A stretch of DNA of 15,129 bases, taken from positions 1 through 15,129 of the forward strand of contig NIVC01005260.1 of the NCBI GenBank assembly GCA_002269645.1, given 5' to 3'. A model generated the notes under the pieces. That model saw only the letters and a program-made list of their open reading frames with translations, was not told the DNA's origin and made no database searches. This DNA is from Macrostomum lignano (lineage: Eukaryota). A program made the translations under genes and the position numbers. Every line of letters starts with the position of its first letter. Within the stretch, counting starts at the first letter, position 1. This document shows positions 1 to 15,129 of the stretch, piece after piece.

Positions 1-47
1 TCGGAACAGGCGGAAAGAAGCTAATCGAGATGGTTGCTTTGCTTCGA
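1..47 (-). CDS. Cav1: Cav1 exon start, IVS4 (truncated by the window edge)
   Basis: ATTTCAG acceptor. Reads (S)[14 protein letters not shown] after removing one extra base near 43-44 and one near 12-16. Confidence 0.85.
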
Positions 48-319
48 CTGAAATTCATGGATTGAGCAGTTGTCCCTTTGTCAGCGAGTTCAAGCTCGAG
101 ACTTTAATTGTCAAGTCACAGAAAGAATCTTCAACGCCAAACTAACAAAAATCAAGTGGAAGTACAACACGTACGTTGTTACCGTAAAAACTCGAAATTA
201 AAATATGAAATTAGCTAAAAAATATTCTTTTTGTTTTATCTAGATTCCTCCAATGGACGTTTTGCTGAACTTTGAAAATCTACTTTCAACGTTTGATTCC
301 GGCACATTAACTTGGGGGG

Positions 320-399
<80 letters not shown>

Positions 400-485
400 C
401 ACCTCCAATCTCAGGCACTGACACTGTGAAAAGGACTGAATAAGTCAATTTTTTTTTGAGTAGCCGATATTTCGAAATTAAGCCT

Positions 486-566
<81 letters not shown>

Positions 567-843
567 GAGAGAGAGGGAGGAGAGAGGGAGAGAGAGAGGG
601 AGAGAGAGGGAGAGAGAGGGAGAGAGGGAGAGAGGGAGAGAGAGAGAGGGAGAGAGAGGGAGAGGGAGAGAGAGAGGAGAGAGGGAGAGAGGGAGAGAGG
701 GAGAGGAGAGAGGGGGGAGAGAGAGAGGGGGAGAGAGAGAGGGAGAGGGAGAGAGGAGAGAGAGGAGGGAGAGAGGGAGAGAGGGAGAGAGAGAGGGAGA
801 GAGAGAGAGAGGGGGAGAGAGAGAGAGAGGGAGAGAGAGAGGA

Positions 844-886
<43 letters not shown>

Positions 887-3800
887 TAGCGCAAAAAGAC
901 CGACTGTATGGTTTACTGGAGTTTGGGCCATAGACAACAAAGCTTCAAACAGGCCTGGGGATTAAGAGGGCAGAAAGGAAGGAGATGTGGAGAGAGACAG
1001 AGAATACAACGTGAATTGTTACATTCCATTAACAATGGAGAACCAGAGCTCCATCGTGCAAGAAACAGTGAATGTGTCTGGTGGTTTTCAGGTGAATGTT
1101 CGGTGTATTGTTTATTATGAACAACTGTACTTTTAACAGTTGCAATCTGTGATGAGGTTTACGGTCACTTAATTTTAAGCAGTGCCCAAAGATGGTTCCT
1201 TTCAGACTTCCTGAGAGGAACTAATAGTACCTATCAAAACAAACAGAATGGATCGTCAGGTGCATTTCTAGTATAATTAATACAAAAGTACATTTACTAG
1301 TGAAAGGGTGCTTCAATAATAAGGAATATAAAATGAAACAAAAGTTCACAACGCTTAAAAAGCTTCCAAAAATCCTCCTCAGTTCCAAAGCAGCTCAGTT
1401 TGGCAACAACCCAGCTTTTTGCGCAGTCAAAAATGACAAATATGGATTTGACAGTTGGTCGGCAAATAGCGTACATGCGTGTGGGCGTGTTTCTCAGCAT
1501 CAAGTGGCGGCTGCACAGGCTCTGGAACGCTATTTGCTTGCTGTATGATCGTATTAAAGGAGAGAGAGACAAGTTGTAGTTAGTAGGGCTGGTTAGACAG
1601 TTTTGCATGTAAAAAAATTGGGTAAATAATTACTTGTCCATATAGATGGACAGCTGAAGCAAAAAGGAGCTGCATTTTCAGATCGTAAAAATTGTTAACA
1701 CACTATAGAGATGTGACCACCTGTAATATAAGCTCGATAAACTTTTTGTAATCATCCATACAGAAAATACATACTTGAAACTTATTTTAAAATTGTTCGT
1801 TTTTAAGCTTAGTGATCCATTCAATACACCCAGAAGTATTATTGCTCTCTTCCACCAGTAAATAAATCACTCACTCAGTAAATAAATAAATAAAACAGTC
1901 ATATCGATTTATTGTACAACAGCTTACCACAATTTTGCTGGATATGATGTCGATATAAGACCCCAGCACGATGACGAAATCTAGCACGTTCCATAGGTCG
2001 CTGAAGTAGTTCTAAAATGTGAGAATAGGAGCCTCGCTATAAATTAACACATCATGATATTGGAGCACTAAACGTTGCTCGCAGGGGCGTCGGCACCGGG
2101 GGGACAGAGGGGACAGGACCCCCGAGTAAAAGCTTTGTCCCCCCACCCAACCTTGTGACCCGTTATGTAAATCAATAGTTTTGCTTCAGGGTGCTTGCGG
2201 CGCTAGAATGAGTGCTGGTGGCGCTAGAATGAGTGCTTGCGGCGCTAGAATGAGTGCTTGCGGCGCTAGAATGAGTGCTTGCGGCGCTAGAATGAGTGCT
2301 GGCGGCGCTAGAATGAGTGTTTGCGGCGCTAGAATGAGTGCTTGCGGCGCTAGAATGAGTGCTTGCGGCGCTAGAATGAGTGCTTGCGGCGCTAGAATGA
2401 GTGCTTGCGGCGCTAGAATGAGTGCTTGCGGCGCTAGAATGAGTGCTTGCGGCGCTAGAATGAGTGCCTGCAGTGCCAAAATATCTGCTGCGCTAAATGT
2501 GCGCTGACAACACAGATCATGTACATGTAAAGTAGAATTCTTGGCTGTGTCTACCCGACCATAAAATTTATGCCGACGCCCCTGTTCTCACCGAGAAGAA
2601 ATTAAGAAGGTAACAAATAAACAAAAATCAGTGATGTTGGTTAAGGTAGAGGTCACGAGGACGTGACCCGCGTCACTGAGAAAAACAGGTTGACAATATT
2701 ACAGCACCAATCACACTGCATGAGGTGGCTATGGATTAGCAGAGGGCTGGAGCACTAGCTTGACCTGCATGTATGCTCTACTTACCCTAAAGCTAAATGC
2801 CACCAGCTTCAAAATGAACTCGATGGTGAAGATGGCGGTGAAGAGCATGTTGAAATAGTCAAGCACCGAGCTGTACGTTTCAGGCTGGCCTTCAAACTGC
2901 AATGATTGACATATGAACTCGTGTGAAAAATTTGAATAGAAATTATTAGCCTGGAATACAAATATACAAAGAAAGTAAGACACAAAGAGTCGAGCGACAT
3001 AGCAAATGTATAGTGGCCCTTCCACACCAAAAATAAGTCTGTAACAAAAAACCAAAATTGCACAACTTCGAAGAAAACTTGTCTTCTTAACGGCAAAATG
3101 GTCCTCCCTAGGTAAAGCCACTTCCCTAGGTCGTATGAAGCGACTTCCCTAGGTCGTATAAAGCGACCTCCCTAGGTCGTATGAAGCGACTTCCCTAGGT
3201 CGTATAAAGCGACCTCCCTAGGTCGTATGAAGCGACCTCTCAATGTATATAAAGCGACTTCCCTAGGTCGTATGAAGCGACCTCCCTAGGTCGTATGAAG
3301 CGACCTCTCAATGTATATAAAGCGACTTCCCAAGGTCGTATGAAGCGACCTCCCTATGTATATAAAGCCACTTCCCTAGGTCGAATGAAGCCACTTCCCT
3401 AGGTCGTATAAAGCGACCTCCCTAGGTCGCATATGAAGCAACTTTCACGACTAGATGTGGGCACCCAAAGAGCTTTTCATGCACTATTTATTCACTTCAA
3501 AAAAAGAATTTTATGAAACCGAGAGAAACATGACAGCAGGTAATATATGGAGGCTTCAGATAGGAAGTTAACCGGTACTAACCTTCATAGCCAGCGCAAT
3601 CGTGTTGAGCATGATCAGCAGAAAAATTCCGTATTCGAATGGCGTCGAGGTGACAAACCACCAGATCTTGTACTGCAACCGTCGTTGCGGTATGTAGCGC
3701 CGCACTGGCTTGGCTTTTAACGCAAATTCGATGCACTTTCGCTGCATAAGAAAGAAGGAAGATCGGGATAATAAATTTAGGGTGTACTACTTGCATTAGC

Positions 3801-6800
3801 ACGCAAAACAAGTGTACGCTGGTGTGTACTCGTACGGATATTGAGAAATCAGTCTGCTAATACATAATACATACTTGATTTTTATGGAAATTTTTAATTT
3901 TGAAGAGTCAAGCTCGTACTGAAGGTCGTTAAATAATTTTCTCTTTTGTTTAGCTAACATGTACTTACTATTATAGTAACTAAAAACGTATATTTCAAAG
4001 CAACATTCATACTGATTGTACAAAAAGAAAAGAGCATGTGAGCAAAGTAAAAAAGTGAAATAATTGTTAACCAATTGCGATTTGACACAATAAATTTGAG
4101 CTGTGAGTAACGATTGTTGCTTCTAAAAGCAGTCTCACTGACACAAAACAACAATCTAAGGTGATCCAGTCGATCAAGTGCCAACACTTTGCAAAAGGAA
4201 CCTGACATACTTTGTACTACATGTGTTGTCGACCCTGTGAATTGGTCGGTCGGTCTGAACTGGATAAAGGAATGTAAAATGAGAAGCGCATGGAGCTGCA
4301 GGGGACGGCGACTTGGCGCAGATTAGCGGGGAACGAACCAATTTAATCCGGGGACCAACTGAGATCCGCACGCCCGACCCGAAAATCCAATCCCCATGCA
4401 GTTAGGAGCCTCATCGACCATTAAGGTTGGCGAATTAAATGTACTATTGCTCCACCGAGAGAGACTGGAATGAATTTTTGTCAAAGTACTTTTACCGTTC
4501 GATAGTTTTTAAGTCTGACAAAAAATATCGGTGTTCAATTATGAACAGAACTACAAGGGTAAATTTACCAGCCCTTGAATTGCACAGAAACAGCTATAGC
4601 TACAGATATTTATGCTCGAACAAGAGTAAAGGGCTCTGCAAACTTCTGCGGAACATCACTACAACACTAGCCTAGTATCACAAGAGCAAGAAAAAATACT
4701 GATTTCCTAAATACATAAATTTGGCCAACAGATGTCATTCGTGTCTCATATCAGCCTCTCCTCGTTTGGCGGCCGGAGAATGTCCTGCATGCTTTGCTGT
4801 CCCGACTTGCCGCTGCCCAGCTCCCGATCGCTGGGCTTATAAACGCCTGTGTCCTTTCGTCGGTCGCGTATCACTTTAAAAGCTAAGCCAGCTGCAGTTC
4901 CGGCTAGCAGAACAAGTAGCAAACCCACTACTAGGCCGACTACCAGACGACTGTCTGCGGCTGGAGCCTGAGTTCCAGCCTCCACAGGCTCCGTTGTCTG
5001 AGCAGTCTGTGGCATCGTTGTCAGAGGCGGAGTCGTCGTTTGCAGAGTCGTCGCTAGCGGAGTCGTCGCTGGCGGAGTCGTCGCTGGCGGAGTCGAACAG
5101 TTGGCGCCGCTGTAACCGTCGGTACAGTTACAGGAGAAAGTCTCCAACGAAGCGATGCTAGTGCAGAATCCGTGCCCTGAGCAGGGCTCCAGGCCGATCG
5201 TGCTTGTGTTGCAGAAATCTCTAGCCTTTAAGCAAAAGTCGCCCCCGTAGCCGGTAGCGGTGCAGTTGCAGCTCGAGTGGAGGTTCCACTGAAGCCGGGG
5301 CAAGCAGCTGCCCCCGTTTGCACAGATGCAGGGGTCCTCATGGCAGCCAGCCAAAACACCGGAGCCATTCAATAGCTGCACATTCGTCACCTCGGCAATG
5401 GCATTATCCGAGGACTCAGTGACCGTCGCATTGGCAAGGCAACCTCTTAGTCCGTCGGTGCCATTAGTACCACCAAAGGTCATCACAGTCCAGTTGAATA
5501 TCGCCGTTAATGCTGTCGTCGGATCTGCAAATACACGTAGCAGTTCAGCTCCATCCAAGCTGACAGTCACGTCGCTAGCATTGGCATCGAGTCTGATGCT
5601 GACAGAGTGCCAGTATCCGTCAGTAAGATTAACAGCAGCTTGGTTGCGACTGCCATTCGAAGGCCAATCAGCAGTCAGATGCTGGAAAGTTATGCCGAGG
5701 ACCAGTTGCAGCATGCTGTTGGTTTCATTGTCCGTCGACGGTGCGTACAAGCCCCAGATGGACCAAGCCGGGTGTGACGCTCGAAACTCGAATGTTGCGA
5801 CAGTTTCAATCGGGATTGCCGAAGCATTTTGGCGCGTCAGATTTGCAACGCCACTGACGTTAAATGTTGCGACATCGGCCGAAGCATTGGAAATTGGCTG
5901 TGTAACCAGAAACAGCACGCCGAAGCAGAAATACAGAAAAAATCGTTGAAGAAACATGCTTCTGCGCCTAACAATTCAACCGAAGCAAAAAAAGTCGTCA
6001 GAGCTATAGTTGCACGAAACAGTTGTTACGAATCTATCGCTTCAGTAGGCCGTAGTTGAGGTAAGCTATATAATCGCTTTCAAACTTGCTCGTTTACTCT
6101 CATGCTTAATTAGACGCAGGCTGAAGCATAATAATAGCTGCAATAGCCACGAAGTTCCACGAGTGTCGTATGTCAGCACGGGCACGATAGAGAGTAGTAG
6201 TAGTACGTCTCTAGTCACGGAGGAAATGCGCCACACTGGTCGCCTTTTATAAGGTACGCTCGCCGTGGCCTTTCTCGCGAACAGCTAGCTGCTTTCCTTT
6301 GTATACACTTCTCTGTATACTCACTATAGCAGCCTGGCCTTCTCTCCAGACACTCACTAATGCAGGGCAGAACTGACTGGACGGATTTGGCGAGCGAATC
6401 TCTCTTGCCAAAAGTTCTGTTGGTCATGCAGTACTCATGTCGTTTTTTCTTAATGCTTCTTTTTATTTTCACTCCTGCTTCGCAGAGAACACGGCCCACA
6501 GGGAAAGTTTTCTCTCGTTTTAGCTCATGTAAAATCGTTTTTATATCGGGCTGACGGACGCGGTCGATTGGGCTGAGTTAGCTGAGCAGAGCCGGGAGGT
6601 AGGGCTGAGAAGCTTTATGGGTAGAGAAAGGGAGTTGGCCTGGAGGGTTATTGGATGAAAGAACTGCAGCTTAGGGCGTGGAGATGTATGAGCTCATTCG
6701 CTTTCCTCCACTCTCTCCTGCCCTAACCGTCTCACCTGCTGAGCACATCCAGATGGTTTCTGTCAGACTTAACTGCGCACGACAATAGGCTCTATAATTT

Positions 6801-9800
6801 CGCGGGGAGTGCTCGTTTCTCACCCTCAGGCCAGCGTGCATGGTCGCTTGGCGTGCATACATGAGCATACATACGGAATGAGGCGCTTTGCATTCAGTGG
6901 CAGACTGAACTTGAGTAAGCAAATGATAGAAGAGATAATTATTTTCAGTGAAAAGGATGACAGTTTTCTGTTGCAACCACTGCCTATTCTTTACTCCTTA
7001 ATATCTGTATAATATGACATTAAGTAATTAAAGCTATCAAGCAAGATAAGGAGTCAGAGGCAAGCACGAGGGACTGTCAAAACAGTTGTGCATATACACG
7101 ATAATGCAGACACGTTATTAGGAGGTGGGGCAGCTATGTACATGAATGGGGCAGTGGGGCTTCACCGCATTTTAACTGCTTTAACCCGTGCCCTAATTTA
7201 ACAGCGCACATGTATAAACATTCTTGCTTGCCTAGATTGACTAAGGGACTGGAGAGTGGCATAATTTTAACCATTGTCAATTATAGAAGCTTGTCTAGCA
7301 GATGTATCAAAGTCGAAGCCTTCTGAGGCAGCGCTCGCTACTTCAACGATCGCTATGCACAGCAAAGTCGGGCACCCCAAACGGTCGATTCGACTGCGCA
7401 GTGATCGGTGCCGGACACAACGGCCTGGTGGCTGCCGCCTACTTGGCTGGCGCTGGTAAGAAAGTCTGCGTACTTGAACGGCGTCATGTGATCGGTGGCG
7501 CTGCCGTAACTGAAGAGATCGTGCCCGGGTTCAAGTTCAGCCGCTGCTCCTACGTGCTGAGCCTGCTGCGCCGAAGGTGATGGAAGACCTTCAGCTAGAA
7601 CGGCATGGCTTGGTCGTGTACACTCGCGACCCCAGCTCCTATACGCCTCTACTGGAGCCCGGGTCGAAAACTGGAGCTCAGTCACTTCTACTGGGCCGCG
7701 ACCACGCGCGGACGCACAGGTCCATCGCCGCATTTTCGCCTCGCGACGCCGACCAGTTTGTCCGCTACGAAGAGCAGATGGGCCGCCTGGCAGCCAGTCT
7801 GGAGCCGCTGCTCGATAACCCGCCGTTCAACTTGCACCACCTGCTGGCATCAAGCGGACTTCGCGCGAAAGCAAGGGAACTCGAACGGGCTAGACCGCTT
7901 TACCGGATGGCGTCTCAGCTCGGACCGCAGCTGCTGCAGCTCTACGAGCTGCTCACTGCGCCAACTTCTCGAATTCTGGATCGCTGGTTCGAGAGCGAGC
8001 CTTTGAAGGCCACTCTGGCCACGGACAGCGTCATCGGAGCAATGATTTCGCCGGACACGCCTGGCAGCGGCTACGTACTACTGCATCACGTGATGGGCGG
8101 AGTGAACAATATCCCAGGAGCATGGGGCTTTGTCCACGGCGGTATGGGATCTGTTAGCAAAGCTATTGCCGAAAGTGCTCAAGCAAGAGGTATGAAACTA
8201 CAGGAACCAATTGCTATTAACGAGTAAACTTTGAAGCTCAATTTGATTTAAAACGCTTAAATCGTTTCTCCTCAGGTGCCAAGATATTCACCGATGCTCC
8301 GGTCTCTCATATCAAAGTAGTAAATGGCAAAACAGAAGGCGTTGTTCTTGCCGACGGCAGCGAAGTAGATGCGCCCGTGGTGTTGTCGAACGCCACGCCG
8401 AAGGTGACGTTCGAAAACCTGCTGCCGCCAGACTCTCTGCCCGAGGACGATTTTCTGGCCAGCGTACGGCGAATCGACTACGCCTCGCCAGTGACGAAAA
8501 TCAACGTGGCCGTTTCCCGACTGCCAAACTTTCTCGCCGATCCCAATCCGGTGTCGGGCGACTGCCCGGACCATTTTCACGGCACCATTCACCTCAACTC
8601 CGACAGCTGCGCCATGATTGATACGGCCTACCGGGCCTGTCAGCAGGGCGGCTACGCTGATAGGCCGGTCATCGAGATGACTGTGCCCTCGTCGCTTGAC
8701 GATAGTCTAGCTCCAAAAGGTACGCGGAAGATTGAGCATTTCTATACTAATATACTGCAGGTCTGGCTGGTTGACTGTCTCCAGAACTTGTTCTAGAAGC
8801 GTCCCAGAGGACTGTGCAAGAGAAGTTAGGCTTATCTGAAACGCCTCCCAAATGATTCAACACTGCTCATAGTTGACTTTATGAACCATGGAAACCACGT
8901 TTTCAATTAGCTTTTAATGCGTCTTCTCTCTGTAGGGGGTTTACCGGATAATCCTCGTCCTAATTACCAATAGGTGCACACGTGGTCCAGCTATTTACTC
9001 AGTACACACCAAAGCTGCTGCATGGCAAGCGGTGGACGCAGGAGGACAAGGACCGCTACACCAGGACCGTGTTCAAATGCATCGACGACTACGCGCCCGG
9101 TTTCTCCGCCTCGGTTGTTGGCAGCGACGTGCTGACTCCGCAGGACCTAGAAGAGACATTCGGTCTCACCGGAGGCAACATCTTCCACGGCGGGATGTCG
9201 CTTGACCAGCTTTACTTCATGCGGCCAACCCCCGAGTACTGCGACTATCGCAGTCCGATCGGCGGCCTCTACCTGTGCGGCAGCGGGGCTCACCCTGGTG
9301 GCGGCGTCATGGGTGCACCTGGACGGCTGTGCGCTTTGGAAGTGCTCAGAGACAGCTAAATGATGATCACTATTGAAGCCATTCATTTTGAATTCAATAG
9401 TTTCCTCTATTATTGAACCTCTATTTCTATTGGAATGGATTTTTTCGGTAATTATAGCAATATTTAGAATTATTCTATTTTTCAATAAGCAGATGTTAGA
9501 ATTCGAAATTTATTTAATAATACATTTTAATAATCACTATACGAACGTAGAAGCAGTCTCAAAAATCCTTGTCTGAAATCGGTAATATTTTTATAGCTGA
9601 TCCTGTAGGGTCAATACCAAACTACATCATAAGAATCAGCTGTTCTTGTCTTCAAAATGAATCAGTGAATGAATGTACCTTATCAGCCTAAAAATAAATC
9701 ATACAAAACAACAGGTCTGCAATGACGCAGACTACAGTTCTTTCTTCTCAGCAGCGTCCTCGCTGTCAGGCTGCTTGGCGGCCTTCTTCGCCGCTTCGTC

Positions 9801-12400
9801 GGTGCCTTGAAGCGTCGGCAGCTCGTCGTACTCGCCCGGCTTGTGCGCCGCCTCGCAGGCGGAGTTGCACCGGGCGAACTCCTCTGCCAGCTCGTGCTCG
9901 CTGACGCACTCGCGCCGGCAAACCTGCAGCTTGCTGAGCCGCTTTGCGCGCATGATTTCTTGGAAAGCCTCCTCGGCTTCGGCGCGCAGCTTCGGATCCT
10001 CCGTGTTCATCAGCATCATGCGGTCGATCTCAGGGCCGGCCTTGGGGTCCTTTTTCATGAAGTCCATGTTGACGTCATCGGCGTCCGGGTAGAAGGCCAG
10101 AGCTGGAAGCGACAGCTGCGTGAGCAGCACCAGCAGCACCGGGAGGGTTTCTCTTCTAAAAGCCGGCTGCATTTCCAAGACAGACGGGTATATCAAACTT
10201 TCAAATCGGGTAGCTCGCATGTTGGACCGGTTTTCAGCATTTTTATACCGGCTTGCCAGCTGATCTCAGTGTCCAATTGCAACGCGACCCGTCATGCCAC
10301 ATCAACACAGAGCAGGTGCGCCGTTCGATAGGAGAACTTTGGGACATTTAGTTTTCCCAATTGCAGTCTGTTCAAACACGCTGGTTCTCTATTTGATTTC
10401 AGTTGCTTCGATTCTGTCACAATCCAGCGCATTGTTCAACCATAAAGGTAAACACACGCCGATTGTGTTTAAACAGTTCACTTCGTATTACTTGACATTG
10501 AGCGAGAGTTATTTATGCAAGCCACCCATAGTCCATAGGGATTTCAAGCTGCCAGATTTTAAGCAGAGCCACCATTGACTTAGAAGCCTTAGCGCTCGAT
10601 AATATCAGCATTTTCCAAGTCAATTTTTTCGATTTTCTAACTCAGTATACTTGAAAACATCTGTTTCCAGGACTTTGATAAGCAATTCGGCGCTCACGAT
10701 TTATACTAATAGCTTCCTCAAAATGTATGTTTAGTCTTCTACATAATGTGCAGCCAGTTCTTCATATCATCTACAAAGCCGCTCCCCATTTCGGTTGGGC
10801 TGGATAGGCTTTTCATAGCGGCCATAGTCTATTGCCAGCCTTGCCGGACTGGAGGGGCTTTTCATAGCGGCCATAGTCTATGGCCAGCCTTGCCGGACTG
10901 GAGGGGCTTTTCATAGCGGCCATAGTCTAAGGCCAGCCTTGCCGGGCGTGGAGCTATTTATAGAACTCTATGTTCGGCAAGGAACGGAGTTTTTTATTGC
11001 TTCGGCGCGAAGAACAAAAAAACGACGCGGGCTAATAACTAACCATGGAAAAACTGCTCACCTGATTCTTGTCCAACTCGCAATTCCTGTACTCTTGCTC
11101 GCCCTCCTGTTGAAAGGTGACAATGACAAAGCCAACGAAGATGTTGACCATAAAGAAGGCGATCACGATGATGAAAGCGACGTAAAACAGCGCCATTGGG
11201 GGCCGATTGTTGTAGGTGCCACCCTGGCCTCCTTATCTGAGTCGATGACATGTACAACAGCCTGCAGTAGATAGAGAGAAATTAGTTTTCTTAATGCTCT
11301 ACTGTCAGTAGCTCGTAGGCTTGTAGGATGAAAAAAGTAATATAGAACTCTACTAACCCGGGCCAGCCCTCGAATGTGGAGGTGGCAAATAGAGACAGCA
11401 TGGCGTGAGCCACGTCATCAAAATTGAGATCCTCATTCTCCCATTCTCTCTCCTTCATCACGGGCTTGGAGATGTCGTTGTCTTTGTAGAAAATGAAGTA
11501 GCCCTGGCACTCTGCTTCCGTAGACTTGGATCCGTCGTTGCACTTTCTGAACTTGCCCTTGAACAGCTGAACACCGATGACGGCGAACATGAACTCGAGC
11601 AGGAAGGTGACCAGCATGATGTTGCCGATGCTCTTCACCGCTACGATCACGCATTGTACGACGTGCTGCGGATTGGGGATTGCAGATTGGGGTTTTGCTG
11701 CTTTTAGAAGAATGCAGGGAGGGGTCGCAAACCTCAACCAAGCTGGAAGGGTAACATACAGTTTAGAAATTGTTTCACAAAGTCCCGTTTTGTCGTGAGT
11801 TTGAATTTGAACTTTTTTTTAGCAATTGCGAGTTTAATAGCGCGATTACTCAGCCTCACCTTGAGCCCCTTGGCCCTGTTGATGGCGCGCAGCGGCCGCA
11901 ACACTCGCAGAACTCGAAGAATTTTCACGACCGAAAACGTGTCCGAACTGAAAATTGAAGTACGAGATGAATTTATCAATACGTGAGACACAAGTTCACT
12001 TTTTTTAATTTAAAATCTTTTTAAAAGTACATTATGCACACGCTTTGAACTTTAGAATGCATCAGGTAGCTAAAGCATCTACCTGTGACTATGCAAAAAC
12101 TGCTGCAAACAAGAACGGATCAAAATTTCCGCCACCACAGGCTAAAAACGTTTGATTTGATTTCTGCTCAGTTCACGAAATTGCAATCGCTGGCAATTCT
12201 TCATGTAACACTTTTTCTCTCATTCACTGGCAAAGCAAACAAAGGTGTATAGCATTCCGAAGTCCACAGCTTTGAGAACTGCGGTGCACTCACGGCGAGA
12301 ATAGGGACATTAAAGCTACAGACACAACCAGCAGGTCCAACAGGTTGAATGTGGACCTGCAGAAGGAGCCTTTGTGCAGGATCACACCGTAAGTGACCAC
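1..12400 (-). CDS. Cav1: Partial multi-exon gene for L-type voltage-gated calcium channel alpha-1 subunit (Cav1; CACNA1C/D-like), repeat III to IVS4; runs off both window edges
   Basis: Exons join at GT-AG sites to give [28 protein letters not shown]...[28 protein letters not shown]...TFEGWPG...[16 protein letters not shown]...[18 protein letters not shown]...[18 protein letters not shown]...ISISFFRLFR. These are Cav1-type IIIS3-IVS4 motifs. Four 1-nt indels must be corrected to keep the frame. Confidence 0.97.
322..392. repeat. (GA)n microsatellite flanked by G-runs
   Basis: Direct reading. Confidence 0.97.
486..881. repeat. Imperfect (GA)n / GGA polypurine tract, about 400 nt
   Basis: Essentially only G and A; pure (GA)n ends with a G-enriched core. 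Confidence 0.97.
1475..1540 (-). CDS. Candidate in-frame cassette exon (66 nt, [22 protein letters not shown]) in the Cav1 IVS3-S4 linker
   Basis: TACTAAC branch point, CT-rich tract and TACAG acceptor; CAT|GTACGC donor (same hexamer as the PYROXD2 donor at 8720); phase 0/0 with no stop codon. No transcript evidence is available. Confidence 0.5.
1928..2011 (-). CDS. Cav1: Cav1 exon (84 nt), IVS3
   Basis: TTTTAG|AAC acceptor and GTG|GTAAGC donor; [28 protein letters not shown]. Confidence 0.95.
2082..2584. mobile_element. MITE-like non-autonomous DNA transposon (503 bp) with perfect 14-bp terminal inverted repeats
   Basis: CAGGGGCGTCGGCA (2082-2095) and TGCCGACGCCCCTG (2571-2584); no coding capacity; no intact TSD found. 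Confidence 0.7.
2191..2467. repeat. 21-bp minisatellite, 13 copies (GTGCTTGCGGCGCTAGAATGA)
   Basis: Near-identical units; explains the ACGARMS and ALILAPQ repeat ORFs. Confidence 0.97.
2786..2896 (-). CDS. Cav1: Cav1 exon (111 nt), IVS2
   Basis: TTGCAG|TTT acceptor and AGG|GTAAGT donor; [37 protein letters not shown]. Confidence 0.96.
3103..3440. repeat. 22-24 bp minisatellite, about 14 copies plus a partial one (CTTCCCTAGGTCGTATGAAGCGA)
   Basis: Direct reading; variant unit CCTCTCAATGTATATAAAGCGA recurs at 3236 and 3304. Confidence 0.95.
3583..3741 (-). CDS. Cav1: Cav1 exon (159 nt), III-IV linker and IVS1
   Basis: TGCAG|CGA acceptor and AAG|GTTAGT donor; [53 protein letters not shown]; not shown in the supplied ORF track. 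Confidence 0.96.
4746..5957 (-). CDS. crb: Intronless short Crumbs-family type I membrane protein, 403 aa (signal peptide, 1 LamG, 2 EGF, Thr/Pro stalk, TM, Crumbs cytoplasmic tail)
   Basis: Hydrophobic N-terminus. LamG motifs [11 protein letters not shown] and GLRGCL. EGF cores CANGGSC...[13 protein letters not shown] and CSGHGFC...[37 protein letters not shown]. Tail GVYKPSDRE...[11 protein letters not shown] matches the Crumbs FERM-binding GxYxPS..E and PDZ-binding ERLI motifs. Confidence 0.9.
   Translation of the reverse strand: MFLQRFFLYFCFGVLFLVTQPISNASADVATFNVSGVANLTRQNASAIPIETVATFEFRASHPAWSIWGLYAPSTDNETNSMLQLVLGITFQHLTADWPSNGSRNQAAVNLTDGYWHSVSIRLDANASDVTVSLDGAELLRVFADPTTALTAIFNWTVMTFGGTNGTDGLRGCLANATVTESSDNAIAEVTNVQLLNGSGVLAGCHEDPCICANGGSCLPRLQWNLHSSCNCTATGYGGDFCLKARDFCNTSTIGLEPCSGHGFCTSIASLETFSCNCTDGYSGANCSTPPATTPPATTPLATTLQTTTPPLTTMPQTAQTTEPVEAGTQAPAADSRLVVGLVVGLLLVLLAGTAAGLAFKVIRDRRKDTGVYKPSDRELGSGKSGQQSMQDILRPPNEERLI
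6244..6251 (-). promoter_or_regulatory. Putative TATA box of the mini-Crumbs gene
   Basis: Minus-strand TATAAAAG with an Inr-like CATTTCC about 24 nt downstream; about 290 nt upstream of the ATG. Confidence 0.35.
7302..9359 (+). CDS. PYROXD2: Pyridine nucleotide-disulfide oxidoreductase domain-containing protein 2 (FAD-dependent, phytoene desaturase-like fold), about 572 aa; join(7302..8189,8276..8719,8974..9359)
   Basis: [15 protein letters not shown] dinucleotide-binding motif, [70 protein letters not shown]. Two phase-1 GT-AG introns (8190-8275, 8720-8973). One missing C at about 7571 (LLR-PKVMED). Arg-rich N-terminus without acidic residues suggests mitochondrial targeting. Confidence 0.95.
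9509..9514 (-). promoter_or_regulatory. Putative polyadenylation signal (AATAAA) for the KKEL gene
   Basis: Plus-strand TTTATT, about 220 nt past the stop at 9732. Confidence 0.4.
9693..9698 (+). promoter_or_regulatory. Putative polyadenylation signal (AATAAA) for PYROXD2
   Basis: First canonical plus-strand AATAAA seen after the stop at 9359. Confidence 0.35.
9732..10172 (-). CDS. Intronless orphan secretory-pathway protein (146 aa from ATG 10172; 162 aa from ATG 10220) with signal peptide, twin CX3C motif and C-terminal KKEL
   Basis: GC-rich coding-like ORF flanked by AT-rich DNA. Signal-like [35 protein letters not shown]-x12-CNSAC, ends EKKEL-stop. TATA box upstream and AATAAA downstream on the same strand. 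Confidence 0.75.
   Translation of the reverse strand: MQPAFRRETLPVLLVLLTQLSLPALAFYPDADDVNMDFMKKDPKAGPEIDRMMLMNTEDPKLRAEAEEAFQEIMRAKRLSKLQVCRRECVSEHELAEEFARCNSACEAAHKPGEYDELPTLQGTDEAAKKAAKQPDSEDAAEKKEL
10240..10247 (-). promoter_or_regulatory. Putative TATA box of the KKEL gene
   Basis: Minus-strand GGTATAAAAATG. Standard spacing puts the start site near 10220, favouring ATG 10172 as the start codon. Confidence 0.45.
10807..10953. repeat. 49-bp tandem repeat, 3 copies
   Basis: GGCTTTTCATAGCGGCCATAGTCTA... starts at 10807, 10856 and 10905. Confidence 0.93.
11062..11261 (-). CDS. Cav1: Cav1 exon, IIIS6 and start of III-IV linker (200 nt as written; 202 needed for frame)
   Basis: CTGCAG acceptor and CAG|GTGAGC donor. 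Reads LLYMS / IDSDKE / [56 protein letters not shown] across three frames, implying 1-nt deletions near 11247 and 11229. Confidence 0.93.
11358..11665 (-). CDS. Cav1: Cav1 exon (308 nt), IIIS5 and pore loop including the selectivity-filter Glu
   Basis: CCGCAG|CAC acceptor and GG|GTTAGT donor; [39 protein letters not shown]...[10 protein letters not shown]. Confidence 0.97.
11860..11947 (-). CDS. Cav1: Cav1 exon (88 nt), IIIS4 voltage sensor
   Basis: TTTTCAG acceptor and AAG|GTGAGG donor; [29 protein letters not shown]; phase 2 to 0. Confidence 0.97.
12294..12400 (-). CDS. Cav1: Cav1 exon (107 nt), IIIS2-S3 linker and IIIS3
   Basis: CAG|GTG acceptor and CC|GTGAGT donor; translates [35 protein letters not shown](P); phase 0 to 2. 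Confidence 0.95.
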
Positions 12401-12708
12401 CTGTGCATTGTATTGTGCATTTGGTTGTATCAATAGTTGTTAGATGGCTAACTATACTAAACTCAATAATGTAGCTACTCAACAAACTAATAAAGAAACA
12501 AAAGTAATTATTAAACATAATAATTTATCACTAGGCACAAAAAGGACGACATAGATTGAACAAAATTGAGTGCATAAGTAATGTAATGTTTAGCGAAAAT
12601 GTGGGTTACATGTAGGTTAATGATGACTAAAAAATAATATGTTACTTTACACCAACCTGTGACCTTAGTTTAAAATTAATTAGAAACAAAAATGTCCTCA
12701 GGCTAGAC

Positions 12709-14567
12709 ATGGGATTCGTCAGACTAGAATTGAGATTCCTGAGCCTATAGAGTTAGGATTCTAGATTGTAGTCTAGACTAGATTGTAGTCTCGAGTTGGG
12801 ATTCCTCAGACTGGAATTGGATTCCTGAGACTATAGAGTTGAGATTCTAGATTGTAGTCTAGACTAGATTGTAGTCTCGACTAGATTGTAGTCTCGAGTT
12901 GGGATTCCTCAGACTGGAATTGGGATTCCTGAGACTATAGAGTTGAGATTCTAGATTGTAGTCTAGACTAGATTGTAGTCTCGACTAGATTGTAGTCTCG
13001 AGTTGGGATTCCTCAGACTGGAATTGGGATTCCTGAGACTATAGAGTTGAGATTCTAGATTGTAGTCTAGACTAGATTGTAGTCTCGACTAGATTGTAGT
13101 CTCGAGTTGGGATTCCTCAGACTGGAATTGGGATTCCTGAGACTATAGAGTTGAGATTCTAGATTGTAGTCTAGACTAGATTGTAGTCTCGACTAGATTG
13201 TAGTCTCGAGTTGGGATTCCTCAGACTGGAATTGGATTCCTGAGACTATAGAGTTGAGATTCTAGATTGTAGTCTAGACTAGATTGTAGTCTCGACTAGA
13301 TTGTAGTCTCGAGTTGGGATTCCTCAGACTGGAATTGGGATTCCTGAGACTATAGAGTTGAGATTCTAGATTGTAGTCTCGACTAGATTGTAGTCTCGAG
13401 TTGGGATTCCTCAGACTGGAATTGGATTCCTGAGACTATAGAGTTAGGATTCTAGATTGTAGTCTAGACTAGATTGTAGTCTCGAGTTGGGATTCCTCAG
13501 ACTGGAATTGGGATTCCTGAGACTATAGAGTTGAGATTCTAGATTGTAGTCTAGACTAGATTGTAGTCTCGACTAGATTGTAGTCTCGAGTTGGGATTCC
13601 TCAGACTGGAATTGGGATTCCTGAGACTATAGAGTTGAGATTCTAGATTGTAGTCTAGACTAGATTGTAGTCTCGACTAGATTGTAGTCTCGAGTTGGGA
13701 TTCCTCAGACTGGAATTGGGATTCCTGAGACTATAGAGTTGAGATTCTAGATTGTAGTCTAGACTAGATTGTAGTCTCGACTAGATTGTAGTCTCGAGTT
13801 GGGATTCCTCAGACTGGAATTGGGATTCCTGAGACTATAGAGTTGAGATTCTAGATTGTAGTCTAGACTAGATTGTAGTCTCGACTAGATTGTAGTCTCG
13901 AGTTGGGATTCCTCAGACTGGAATTGGATTCCTGAGACTATAGAGTTGAGATTCTAGATTGTAGTCTAGACTAGATTGTAGTCTCGACTAGATTGTAGTC
14001 TCGAGTTGGGATTCCTCAGACTGGAATTGGGATTCCTGAGACTATAGAGTTGAGATTCTAGATTGTAGTCTAGAACTAGATTGTAGTCTCGACTAGATTG
14101 TAGTCTCGAGTTGGGATTCCTCAGACTGGAATTGGGATTCCTGAGACTATAGAGTTGAGATTCTAGATTGTAGTCTCGACTAGATTGTAGTCTCGAGTTG
14201 GGATTCCTCAGACTGGAATTGGGATCCTGAGACTATAGAGTGAGATTCTAGATTGTAGTCTAGACTAGATTGTAGTCTCGACTAGATTGTAGTCTCGAGT
14301 TGGGATTCCTCAGACTGGAATTGGGATTCCTGAGACTATAGAGTTGAGATTCTAGATTGTAGTCTCGACTAGATTGTAGTCTCGAGTTGGGATTCCTCAG
14401 ACTGGAATTGGGATTCCTGAGACTATAGAGTTGAGATTCTAGATTGTAGTCTCGACTAGATTGTAGTCTCGAGTTGGATTCCTCAGACTGGAATTGGGAT
14501 TCCTGAGACTATAGAGTTAGGATTCTAGATTGTAGTCTAGCCTAGATTGTAGTCTCGAGTTGGGATT
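12709..14567. repeat. Composite satellite array, about 19 units of 104 bp (87-bp variants)
   Basis: Unit = GTTGGGATTCCTCAGACTGGA + ATTGGGATTCCTGAGACTATAGA + GTTGAGATT + 2-3 copies of the 17-mer CTAGATTGTAGTCT(A/C)GA. Confidence 0.97.
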
Positions 14568-14938
14568 TTTTTATTATTTTATTAGAGGCAGCGGGGTTGT
14601 GTGCACCCTGGCGCACTTTAAAGCGACATAGGCACACAACCGGCGAGAGGCATTACTGCCCATTTCCGCCGACTCCCCTGAGCAGGCATACAAGCGCGCG
14701 GATACGTACGCAGGCACACACTCACACAGGAGTGACAGCGGCACTAACTTTATATTATCGTTAGGCACATGTACACTTCACTGCGCCTTGGGGGGTTGGC
14801 TCTCAAGGCCGTTAATTGCACGAGCAGAGCCAAGCCGAGATTCCAATTCAGCCCCAAATTAATGTGACTGCACTTGGAATCGAGCCTGGGTCGCTGGCAC
14901 AACAGAGCAGCTGCGCTACCGCTGGGCTACGGCCCCCC
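14568..14938 (-). mobile_element. tRNA-derived SINE (about 370 bp) inserted into the satellite
   Basis: Minus-strand box A TAGCCCAGCGG (14919-14929), box B GGCTCGATTCC (14876-14886), A-rich tail AATAAAATAATAAAAAAA. 15-bp TSD TCT(C/A)GAGTTGGGATT at 14553-14567 and 14940-14954 with one mismatch. Confidence 0.85.
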
Positions 14939-14939
14939 T

Positions 14940-15129
14940 TCTAGAGTTGGGATTCCTCAGACTGGAATTGGAATTCCTGAGACTATAGAGTGGGATTCTA
15001 GATTGTAGTCTAGACTAGATTGTAGTCTAGAGTTGGGATTCCCCAGACTGGAGTTGGGAATTCCCCAGACTGGAGTTGGGATTCCCAGACTGGAGTTGGA
15101 TTCCCCAGACTGGAGTTGGGATTCCCAGA
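14940..15129. repeat. Continuation of the satellite, changing to a simpler ~20-22 bp unit (GATTCCCCAGACTGGAGTTGG)
   Basis: Satellite register resumes after the TSD; the simpler unit repeats from about 15036 to the window end. Confidence 0.93.

Follow-up and report, generated by a model that had tools for sequence, protein, structure and literature searches.

The stretch of DNA analysed here, called the window in the following, covers 15,129 nucleotides (nt) of the genome of the flatworm Macrostomum lignano (GenBank assembly GCA_002269645.1, contig NIVC01005260.1, positions 1 to 15,129 of the forward strand). Within an intron of a calcium-channel gene it carries, on the minus strand, an intronless coding sequence (CDS), Mlig007680, for a protein of 403 amino acids (aa) which combines a small LamG-EGF-EGF ectodomain with a cytoplasmic tail of the type found in the Crumbs polarity proteins. 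This open reading frame (ORF) is likely to represent a functional Crumbs paralogue, short and with a single coding exon, that was duplicated from the 3' part of the long Crumbs gene of the lineage. A sequence-only reading of the window had described the protein as composed of a signal peptide, one LamG domain, two EGF domains, a repeat stalk, a transmembrane (TM) helix and a tail of 43 aa, and all of these elements were located, as follows.

4746..5957, minus strand: complete single-exon CDS of the short Crumbs paralogue (Mlig007680, 403 aa; stop codon at 4746-4748), from the ORF list
5976..5978, minus strand: in-frame TGA, 18 nt 5' of the ATG, read from the sequence
5877..5957, minus strand: signal peptide, residues 1-27, read from the sequence
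5343..5876, minus strand: LamG/LNS domain, residues 28-205, including a cysteine pair (C173-C205) as usual in LNS domains (Pfam, neurexin match, AlphaFold2 model and Foldseek)
5229..5342, minus strand: EGF-like domain 1, residues 206-243 (C210, C212, C218, C230, C232, C242), from alignment
5094..5225, minus strand: EGF-like domain 2, residues 245-288 (C249 to C287), Pfam EGF
4947..5093, minus strand: mucin-like Thr/Pro-rich stalk, residues 289-337, with a 15-nt (TTPPA) tandem repeat (Tandem Repeats Finder, TRF, and composition)
4878..4946, minus strand: TM helix, residues 338-360, the Kyte-Doolittle maximum of the protein
4749..4877, minus strand: Crumbs-type cytoplasmic tail, residues 361-403 (43 aa), from a PDB match and the tail alignment
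4821..4859, minus strand: FERM-binding motif, residues 367-379, fitting RxxxGxYxPS as defined in PMC5968619
4749..4760, minus strand: PDZ-binding motif ERLI at the C-terminus, residues 400-403, seen in the sequence and identical in all tails aligned

The ORF starts with an ATG, and its 403-aa product is identical to a protein of M. lignano in NCBI, encoded on contig NIVC01000282.1 of the same assembly. Sister proteins are PAA65284.1 (408 aa, Mlig007680g1) and PAA49883.1 (316 aa, g2); the names given to the Mlig007680 proteins in GenBank are just "hypothetical protein" or "EGF-like domain-containing protein". The absence of introns from the CDS, as claimed in the sequence-only reading, agrees with the annotation of the sister copy, which uses the identical ATG and assigns a range of 1,227 nt to a product of 408 aa, indicating that this CDS is intronless as well. 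The GenBank annotation of M. lignano was built from RNA-seq-derived transcript models, and the mean number of introns per gene is 4.9 (PMC5730564). A 207-aa ORF running antisense to the CDS (5326-5949, plus strand) has nothing independent in its favour and most likely just shadows the coding strand.

The signal peptide consists of a basic n-region (MFLQR), a hydrophobic core of 13 residues and the end TQPISNASA/D, with A-x-A at positions -3/-1. The hydropathy scan revealed a single strong hydrophobic segment, which aligns with the TM helix of Crumbs proteins, so that the protein has the single-pass type I topology with N-terminal signal peptide that characterizes the family. Of the extracellular modules, EGF-like domain 2 is recognised by Pfam (residues 257-286, E 2.2e-6, 28.2 bits, over the cutoff) and also matches mouse EGF (E 4e-4), whereas the LamG domain scored below threshold (Laminin_G_2, E 7e-4, 20.5 bits compared to a cutoff of 22.9 bits). 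A match to the LNS+EGF unit of neurexin-1 alpha was obtained among PDB sequences (E 2.3e-4), and residues ~100-245 align with >40 LamG-EGF units of Caspr-, neurexin- and Crumbs-like proteins. The cysteine columns of EGF-like domain 1 are invariant in a multiple alignment (A2), and the counterpart of this domain in neurexin and Crumbs is the EGF which comes after LNS domains. For residues 28-292, an AlphaFold2 model based on an alignment of 18 sequences drawn from the LamG matches reached a predicted local distance difference test score (pLDDT) of 70 and a predicted template modelling score (pTM) of 0.62. When it was compared with the PDB by Foldseek, the first 46 of the 50 matches listed were LamG/LNS folds (best E 1.5e-9, probability 1.00), including neurexin LNS5-EGF3-LNS6, CELSR1, perlecan LG3, laminin LG, SHBG and agrin; pentraxin folds follow among the matches listed. 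The 14 cysteines of the ectodomain equal one LamG disulfide plus two times three EGF disulfides. The protein moreover contains 16 N-glycosylation sequons, a feature beyond the sequence-only reading. The repeat of the stalk was resolved by TRF as 4.7 copies of a 15-nt unit (5026-5095), and 17 of the 49 stalk residues are Ser or Thr and 10 are Pro.

The tail contains GVYKPSDRE and ends with PPNEERLI directly before the stop codon. According to Belahbib et al., the signature of Crumbs consists of two tail motifs, RxxxGxYxPS and terminal ERLI (PMC5968619); the first is present as R367-K-D-T-G371-V-Y373-K-P375-S376, and the second forms the C-terminus as a PDZ-binding motif of class II. With 43 aa, the tail is comparable in length to other Crumbs tails (about 37-40 aa) and shows one 3-residue gap relative to the 37-aa tail of the Drosophila protein. 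In Drosophila numbering, R4, G8, Y10, P12, S13 and E16 are kept, and T6, R7 and T9 are replaced by D, T and V, respectively. Residues Y10, P12 and E16 are those which were mutated in functional studies of Drosophila Crumbs (fosmid structure-function paper). The phospho-acceptor sequence TxGTY (T6, T9) of aPKC (atypical protein kinase C) is absent, with D and V in the place of the two threonines and a Thr at position 7. These threonines are typical of cnidarian and bilaterian Crumbs; since they are also absent in C. elegans and in non-bilaterians (PMC5968619), their loss does not disqualify the protein. The sole match to the tail in the PDB was the Drosophila Crumbs tail, in structures with PALS1 (4WSI) and moesin (4YL8), which aligned end to end (E 0.0066). 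The whole tail of 41 residues can be aligned with Crumbs tails from end to end; 11 columns do not vary, among them G, Y, P, E, P and EERLI. Residues 205-403 furthermore align with residues 2373-2568 of a dragonfly "protein crumbs" of 2,568 aa (E 3.5e-7, whole library), and pairwise BLAST gave an alignment (E 2e-12) which is collinear from EGF-like domain 1 through the TM helix to ERLI and includes the last residue of both proteins. Membership of the Crumbs family, as proposed from the sequence at first reading, is therefore supported by the two tail signatures, to which the PDB match and the collinearity with the dragonfly protein add.

A separate full-length Crumbs, which the sequence-only reading had recommended looking for, was found in the genome of M. 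lignano as Mlig013136 plus a split gene model upstream. Mlig013136g1 (PAA62533.1/PAA70382.1) is a 5'-partial model of 490 aa with the architecture (LamG)-EGF-EGF-LamG-EGF-TM and a tail of the form ...RRKESGTYGPS...RPPPEERLI. Exon map and sequence indicate a multi-exon locus in which the LamG-EGF-TM module occupies one exon and the tail is encoded by a last exon of its own. More exons are located directly upstream on this strand; they are annotated as a separate 374-aa EGF protein and are collinear with residues ~870-1458 of the dragonfly Crumbs; one of them is 42% identical (E 9e-28) and another gave E 3e-31. The long Crumbs locus is also collinear with dragonfly residues 2080-2178. The gene is apparently split over two gene models, i.e. 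the 374-aa EGF protein and Mlig013136g1 (L004 3058-15424, L005 1-9463). As judged from these loci, M. lignano has a canonical long Crumbs with a split gene model, and the 403-aa protein is a second, short Crumbs; it is a paralogue because the separate long Crumbs is encoded in the same genome.

As had been suspected, the short protein is similar to the membrane-proximal end of M. lignano's own Crumbs, since the long gene ends with LamG-EGF-TM-tail. Module order in the short protein and in the C-terminal end of the long one is identical save for one extra EGF domain and the stalk in the former. Similarity of the C-terminal modules to those of Mlig013136 corresponds to z = 16 versus shuffles, and that of the LamG domain alone to z of about 3, with one of 300 shuffles reaching the score. 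Among 61 distinct Crumbs tails, the best for the short protein was that of Mlig013136 (19 of 41 residues identical, score 80 compared to 77 for the next), and the two M. lignano tails share RRK[DE][ST]G and RPPxEERLI. No description of Crumbs from any flatworm was found in the literature searched, and neither Mlig007680 nor Mlig013136 was found to be mentioned in the text or supplements of the M. lignano papers searched.

The Crumbs family is known to span long, intermediate (EAT-20) and minimal (CRB3, CRB-3) members. Like the long proteins (Drosophila Crb, vertebrate CRB1/CRB2, C. elegans CRB-1 and Mlig013136), the short protein of M. lignano is a type I protein with LamG and EGF modules near the membrane, a collinear EGF-TM-tail arrangement and a short tail with RxxxGxYxPS and ERLI. 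EGF- and LamG-like modules are thus present in its ectodomain as expected for Crumbs, but in a number far below that of the long proteins: one LamG and two EGF domains in 403 aa contrast with 2-4 LamG and 15-30 EGF domains in 1,300-2,500 aa, and the several LamG and many EGF domains which define the long subtype are lacking. Further differences are the added Thr/Pro repeat stalk, the single-exon CDS as compared to the multi-exon long gene of M. lignano with its tail on an own exon, and the D/V pair at T6/T9, of which T9 is kept in the long M. lignano protein. Vertebrate CRB3 and C. elegans CRB-3 are likewise short, and TM helix, FERM-binding motif and ERLI tail carry their function. However, proteins of this type comprise about 100-120 aa without a recognisable extracellular domain, whereas the short protein has a folded LamG-EGF-EGF ectodomain of about 260 aa, which places it outside the CRB3 subtype, and 16 sequons. 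EAT-20 of C. elegans also is of intermediate length beside a long paralogue, contains EGF repeats and has kept the residues for FERM and PDZ binding, but it consists of 808 aa with three EGF domains and no LamG domain reported, and a specific sequence relationship to the short protein was not detected by a HMMER search of 1.84 billion representative proteins. The LNS-EGF units of neurexin and Caspr are the best match to the LamG-EGF junction (G-C-L...G-C...C-x-N-G-G-x-C...W-N) and to the predicted fold; these proteins, in contrast, have multiple LNS domains, and their tails are different, without the spacing of the Crumbs FERM-binding motif and without ERLI.

Duplication of the 3' portion of the long Crumbs gene in this lineage would fit these data as the origin of the short gene, by a thin margin. 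The LamG-EGF-TM and tail exons of the long gene would have been duplicated, and the copy would subsequently have lost one intron, gained a signal peptide and the repeat stalk, and diverged strongly in its ectodomain. Compared to the long gene, the intronless short CDS misses only the intron between TM helix and tail; the LamG-EGF-TM module already is one exon in the long gene, and therefore only this one intron had to be lost. The suggestion that the gene was possibly retroposed was not supported. There is no A-tract downstream of the stop codon which might be a poly(A) remnant, no flanking direct repeat of at least 11 nt was found as a target-site duplication, the genomic copies share their flanking genes, and there was one intron to lose. 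Retroposition is neither needed nor supported; with so deep a divergence, both of its traces may have been erased.

The same HMMER search, which was exhaustive, yielded 75 weak matches, mostly to generic EGF/LamG proteins, and no protein collinear from LamG to tail. Matches whose best stretch extends to the last residue were all of Crumbs type, namely the dragonfly Crumbs, a JGI fragment, a CRB3-like protein of 177 aa and a protein of M. lignano. Another protein of 198 aa (P0013) has a Crumbs-type tail at its end, with the best-scoring stretch in the EGF region. The alignment of the 177-aa CRB3-like protein (P0052) covers residues 288-403; its stalk is Thr-rich and its tail ends in ERLI. Neither the full protein nor the ectodomain by itself retrieved anything but the query cluster in word-indexed searches of 5.8 billion clusters, and a profile of five Crumbs tails retrieved short arthropod last-exon ORFs only and no flatworm protein. 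P0012 and P0016 were considered as precedents of a "mini" Crumbs and rejected, as they are fragmentary nematode models of long CRB-1-type proteins. A protein of the same architecture was not present in the databases searched. The claim that the short form is independently derived is consistent with the lack of a collinear orthologue among the representative proteins, without being proven by it.

Alternatively, the short architecture might be ancient: the gene would then be orthologous to an older Crumbs lineage of short or intermediate proteins, comparable to the EAT-20/CRB3 type, with other members too diverged or absent from the sample. Crumbs genes number more than one in many animals and differ greatly in the length of the ectodomain (PMC5968619), the 177-aa protein aligns with the stalk, TM helix and tail region, and the searches took in representative databases, not other Macrostomum and most flatworm genomes directly. 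We nevertheless consider an ancient origin unlikely, as a protein collinear from LamG to tail was missing among the representatives, the clusters contained the protein itself only, and the tail is slightly closest to that of the species' own long Crumbs, with which it shares the two sequence blocks mentioned above.

The short Crumbs locus exists in three genomic copies, 97-99% identical and with the same neighbours. Genome duplication is known in M. lignano, and the three copies, which share their flanking genes, derive from it and not from independent insertions or retroposition. The window is 99.5% identical to NIVC01000282.1, a contig which ends at window position ~10558, the window being 4.5 kb longer. 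Between the CDS of the window copy and that of a second copy (L002), there are 15 point differences (98.8% identity) and one indel, an in-frame 15-nt repeat unit in the stalk. The adjacent flanks are 94.4% (3') and 92.5% (5') identical, i.e., divergence is 3 to 6 times lower in the CDS than in the flanks. The ratio of nonsynonymous to synonymous differences per site (pN/pS) between these copies is 0.44, calculated from about 15 substitutions, and in the two intact copies no amino-acid change affects the TM helix, the tail or any of the 14 cysteines of the ectodomain. In the third copy (L003 10001-10951, NIVC01003770.1), 1 nt is missing within the stalk repeat, at CDS nt 913, and the product PAA49883.1 (316 aa) is without TM helix and tail; this frameshift reflects either a dying copy or an assembly error.

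The gene might also be a duplicate in decay or without function, which arose recently as a by-product when genes and the genome were duplicated and which is transcribed but not needed. Truncation of one of the three products before the TM helix by the 1-nt deletion would agree with this, as would a pN/pS value that does not indicate strong constraint and is derived from few changes, and C. elegans tolerates the loss of all three of its Crumbs genes. However, the ectodomain is merely 20-30% identical to that of any relative while the tail motifs are intact, which argues for long-term maintenance of the gene and of its open frame. Such a duplicate is rendered quite improbable also by the lower divergence of the CDS relative to its flanks and the unchanged cysteines, TM helix and tail of the two intact copies; moreover, the frameshift is located in a repeat of a PacBio-era assembly and may be an assembly error.

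The remaining features of the window belong to the channel gene, to the other genes in its intron and to the flanks of the short Crumbs CDS.

11291..11737, minus strand: exon of the calcium-channel (Cav) gene, matching Cav1.3 residues 999-1107 (E 1.5e-55), sequence match
2729..3121, minus strand: exon of the Cav gene with an Ion_trans match, domain match
9732..10220, minus strand: gene in the Cav intron, ORF of 162 aa, annotated as a gene in both sister loci
~7353-9359, plus strand: multi-exon gene in the Cav intron for a 572-aa FAD/NAD-binding oxidoreductase, from annotation
6244..6251, minus strand: candidate TATA box TATAAAAG, 287 nt upstream of the ATG, a consensus match in the sequence (speculative)
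4342..4347, minus strand: candidate poly(A) signal ATTAAA, about 400 nt past the stop codon, from a pattern search (speculative)

The short Crumbs gene is situated on the same strand as, and within an intron of about 8 kb of, a gene for an L-type calcium-channel alpha1 subunit (Cav1); an annotated gene model for a 1,973-aa channel spans the whole sister locus (L002 1-21227). This intron contains three complete genes, whose arrangement is identical in all three copies. The 162-aa ORF belongs to no Pfam family; its product is hydrophobic in an N-terminal segment and rich in Lys, Glu and Ala at the C-terminus. In the annotation, the 572-aa oxidoreductase is assigned to the Pfam families NAD_binding_8, Amino_oxidase and DAO; its single exons alone are without a Pfam match. 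The introns of the channel gene are dense in tandem repeats (322-881, 2191-2471, 3113-3444, 10800-10953, 12761-14567), comprising (GA)n of about 240 units, a 21-bp unit repeated 13 times, a 23/68-bp unit, three copies of a 49-bp unit, and a 104-bp satellite which forms ~1.8 kb of overlapping 87/104/189-bp arrays with 95-99% identity. Several of these repeats create long spurious ORFs.

Its position on the Cav1 strand within a Cav1 intron raises the question of whether the ORF stands alone or is a terminal or alternative exon of a longer transcript, either of an upstream Crumbs-like gene or of the Cav1 host. AG/CAG acceptor-like sites, preceded by a run of T, occur 4 and 10 nt before the ATG and 3' of the in-frame stop; their location between upstream stop and ATG makes an intron in the 5' untranslated region or trans-splicing possible, and polycistronic precursors account for about 7% of M. 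lignano transcripts (PMC5730564). However, the CAG 4 nt before the ATG does not match the published spliced-leader acceptor motif, [T/C]TNCAG. The first 27 residues form a textbook signal peptide, which is sensible only at an N-terminus, the transcript-based annotation has a separate gene for the 403/408-aa product, and tblastn with the dragonfly Crumbs and the long M. lignano Crumbs detected no other EGF- or LamG-like exon in the 15-kb window on either strand. Taken together, signal peptide, annotation and the negative tblastn result strongly argue against a terminal exon of a longer gene, the outcome which the sequence-only reading had named as fatal to its proposal, and we regard a longer transcript as very improbable.

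That the tail is convergent, the protein being a neurexin/Caspr-type LamG-EGF adhesion protein which acquired FERM- and PDZ-binding motifs by chance, is hardly credible: its best LamG matches are Caspr/neurexin-IV-like and not Crumbs LamG domains, and motifs of both kinds are combined also in further membrane proteins such as ICAM-2 and syndecans, but the end-to-end alignment of 41 tail residues with 11 invariant columns, a spacing from the TM helix equal to that in Crumbs, the EGF-TM-tail order collinear with Crumbs at a pairwise E of 2e-12, and the different tails of neurexin and Caspr all speak for homology.

Several points weigh against the interpretation of the ORF as a functional short paralogue derived from the long Crumbs gene. 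One of its three copies is frameshifted in the stalk, and the pN/pS value was obtained from merely about 15 substitutions. The closeness of the tail to that of the long M. lignano Crumbs is marginal (score 80 compared to 77). Assignment of the LamG domain draws on weak sequence matches that converge and on the predicted structure; the match to the LamG family lies below the Pfam threshold, and the predicted structure is of moderate confidence, its alignment having been assembled from LamG matches. The acceptor-like sites, judged from DNA alone, may leave room for an upstream exon. Assignment of a function, finally, would be drawn entirely from motif conservation.

The product of the short gene is predicted to be a heavily N-glycosylated type I membrane protein with a Thr/Pro stalk of the O-glycosylation type and a 43-aa Crumbs tail. 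The LamG-EGF head on its mucin-like stalk would project from the apical surface. ERLI is the PDZ ligand of PALS1/Stardust and Par-6, and the ERLI of the short protein would dock into the PDZ domain of PALS1/Stardust or, alternatively, of Par-6, while the juxtamembrane motif would bind FERM proteins such as Moesin, Yurt/EPB41L5 or Expanded. The co-occurrence of ERLI and the FERM-binding motif suggests a placement as scaffold at the apical membrane, where the short Crumbs may nucleate or join the apical Crumbs polarity complex. In Drosophila, phosphorylation of the Crumbs tail by aPKC releases moesin, not PALS1. Since both aPKC threonines are replaced in the short protein (T6 by D, T9 by V), its FERM binding is likely uncoupled from aPKC and is probably not switched off by the kinase as in the Drosophila tail. 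A tentative, rather speculative picture is that of a mini-Crumbs of the Macrostomum lineage which was formed by duplication of the last LamG-EGF-TM-tail module alone of an ancestral Crumbs and lost the aPKC switch, its FERM-binding and ERLI motifs being fully preserved, and which might serve as an apical scaffold insensitive to aPKC or compete with the long Crumbs, maybe co-regulated with the Cav host gene.

The short protein is best regarded as a hitherto overlooked member of a known family, unusual for its intermediate architecture and without a new mechanism. Ectodomains of a few residues up to >2,000 had already been known for Crumbs. The finding would not surprise specialists but is sound for annotation: it corrects the annotation of three "hypothetical protein" entries in GenBank, and it establishes that M. 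lignano has at least two Crumbs genes. Crumbs function is largely borne by the tail, and the contribution of the large ectodomain is debated. M. lignano is amenable to transgenesis and RNA interference, and a natural mini-Crumbs beside a long paralogue would provide a simple comparative system for the roles of the ectodomain and of the aPKC sites.

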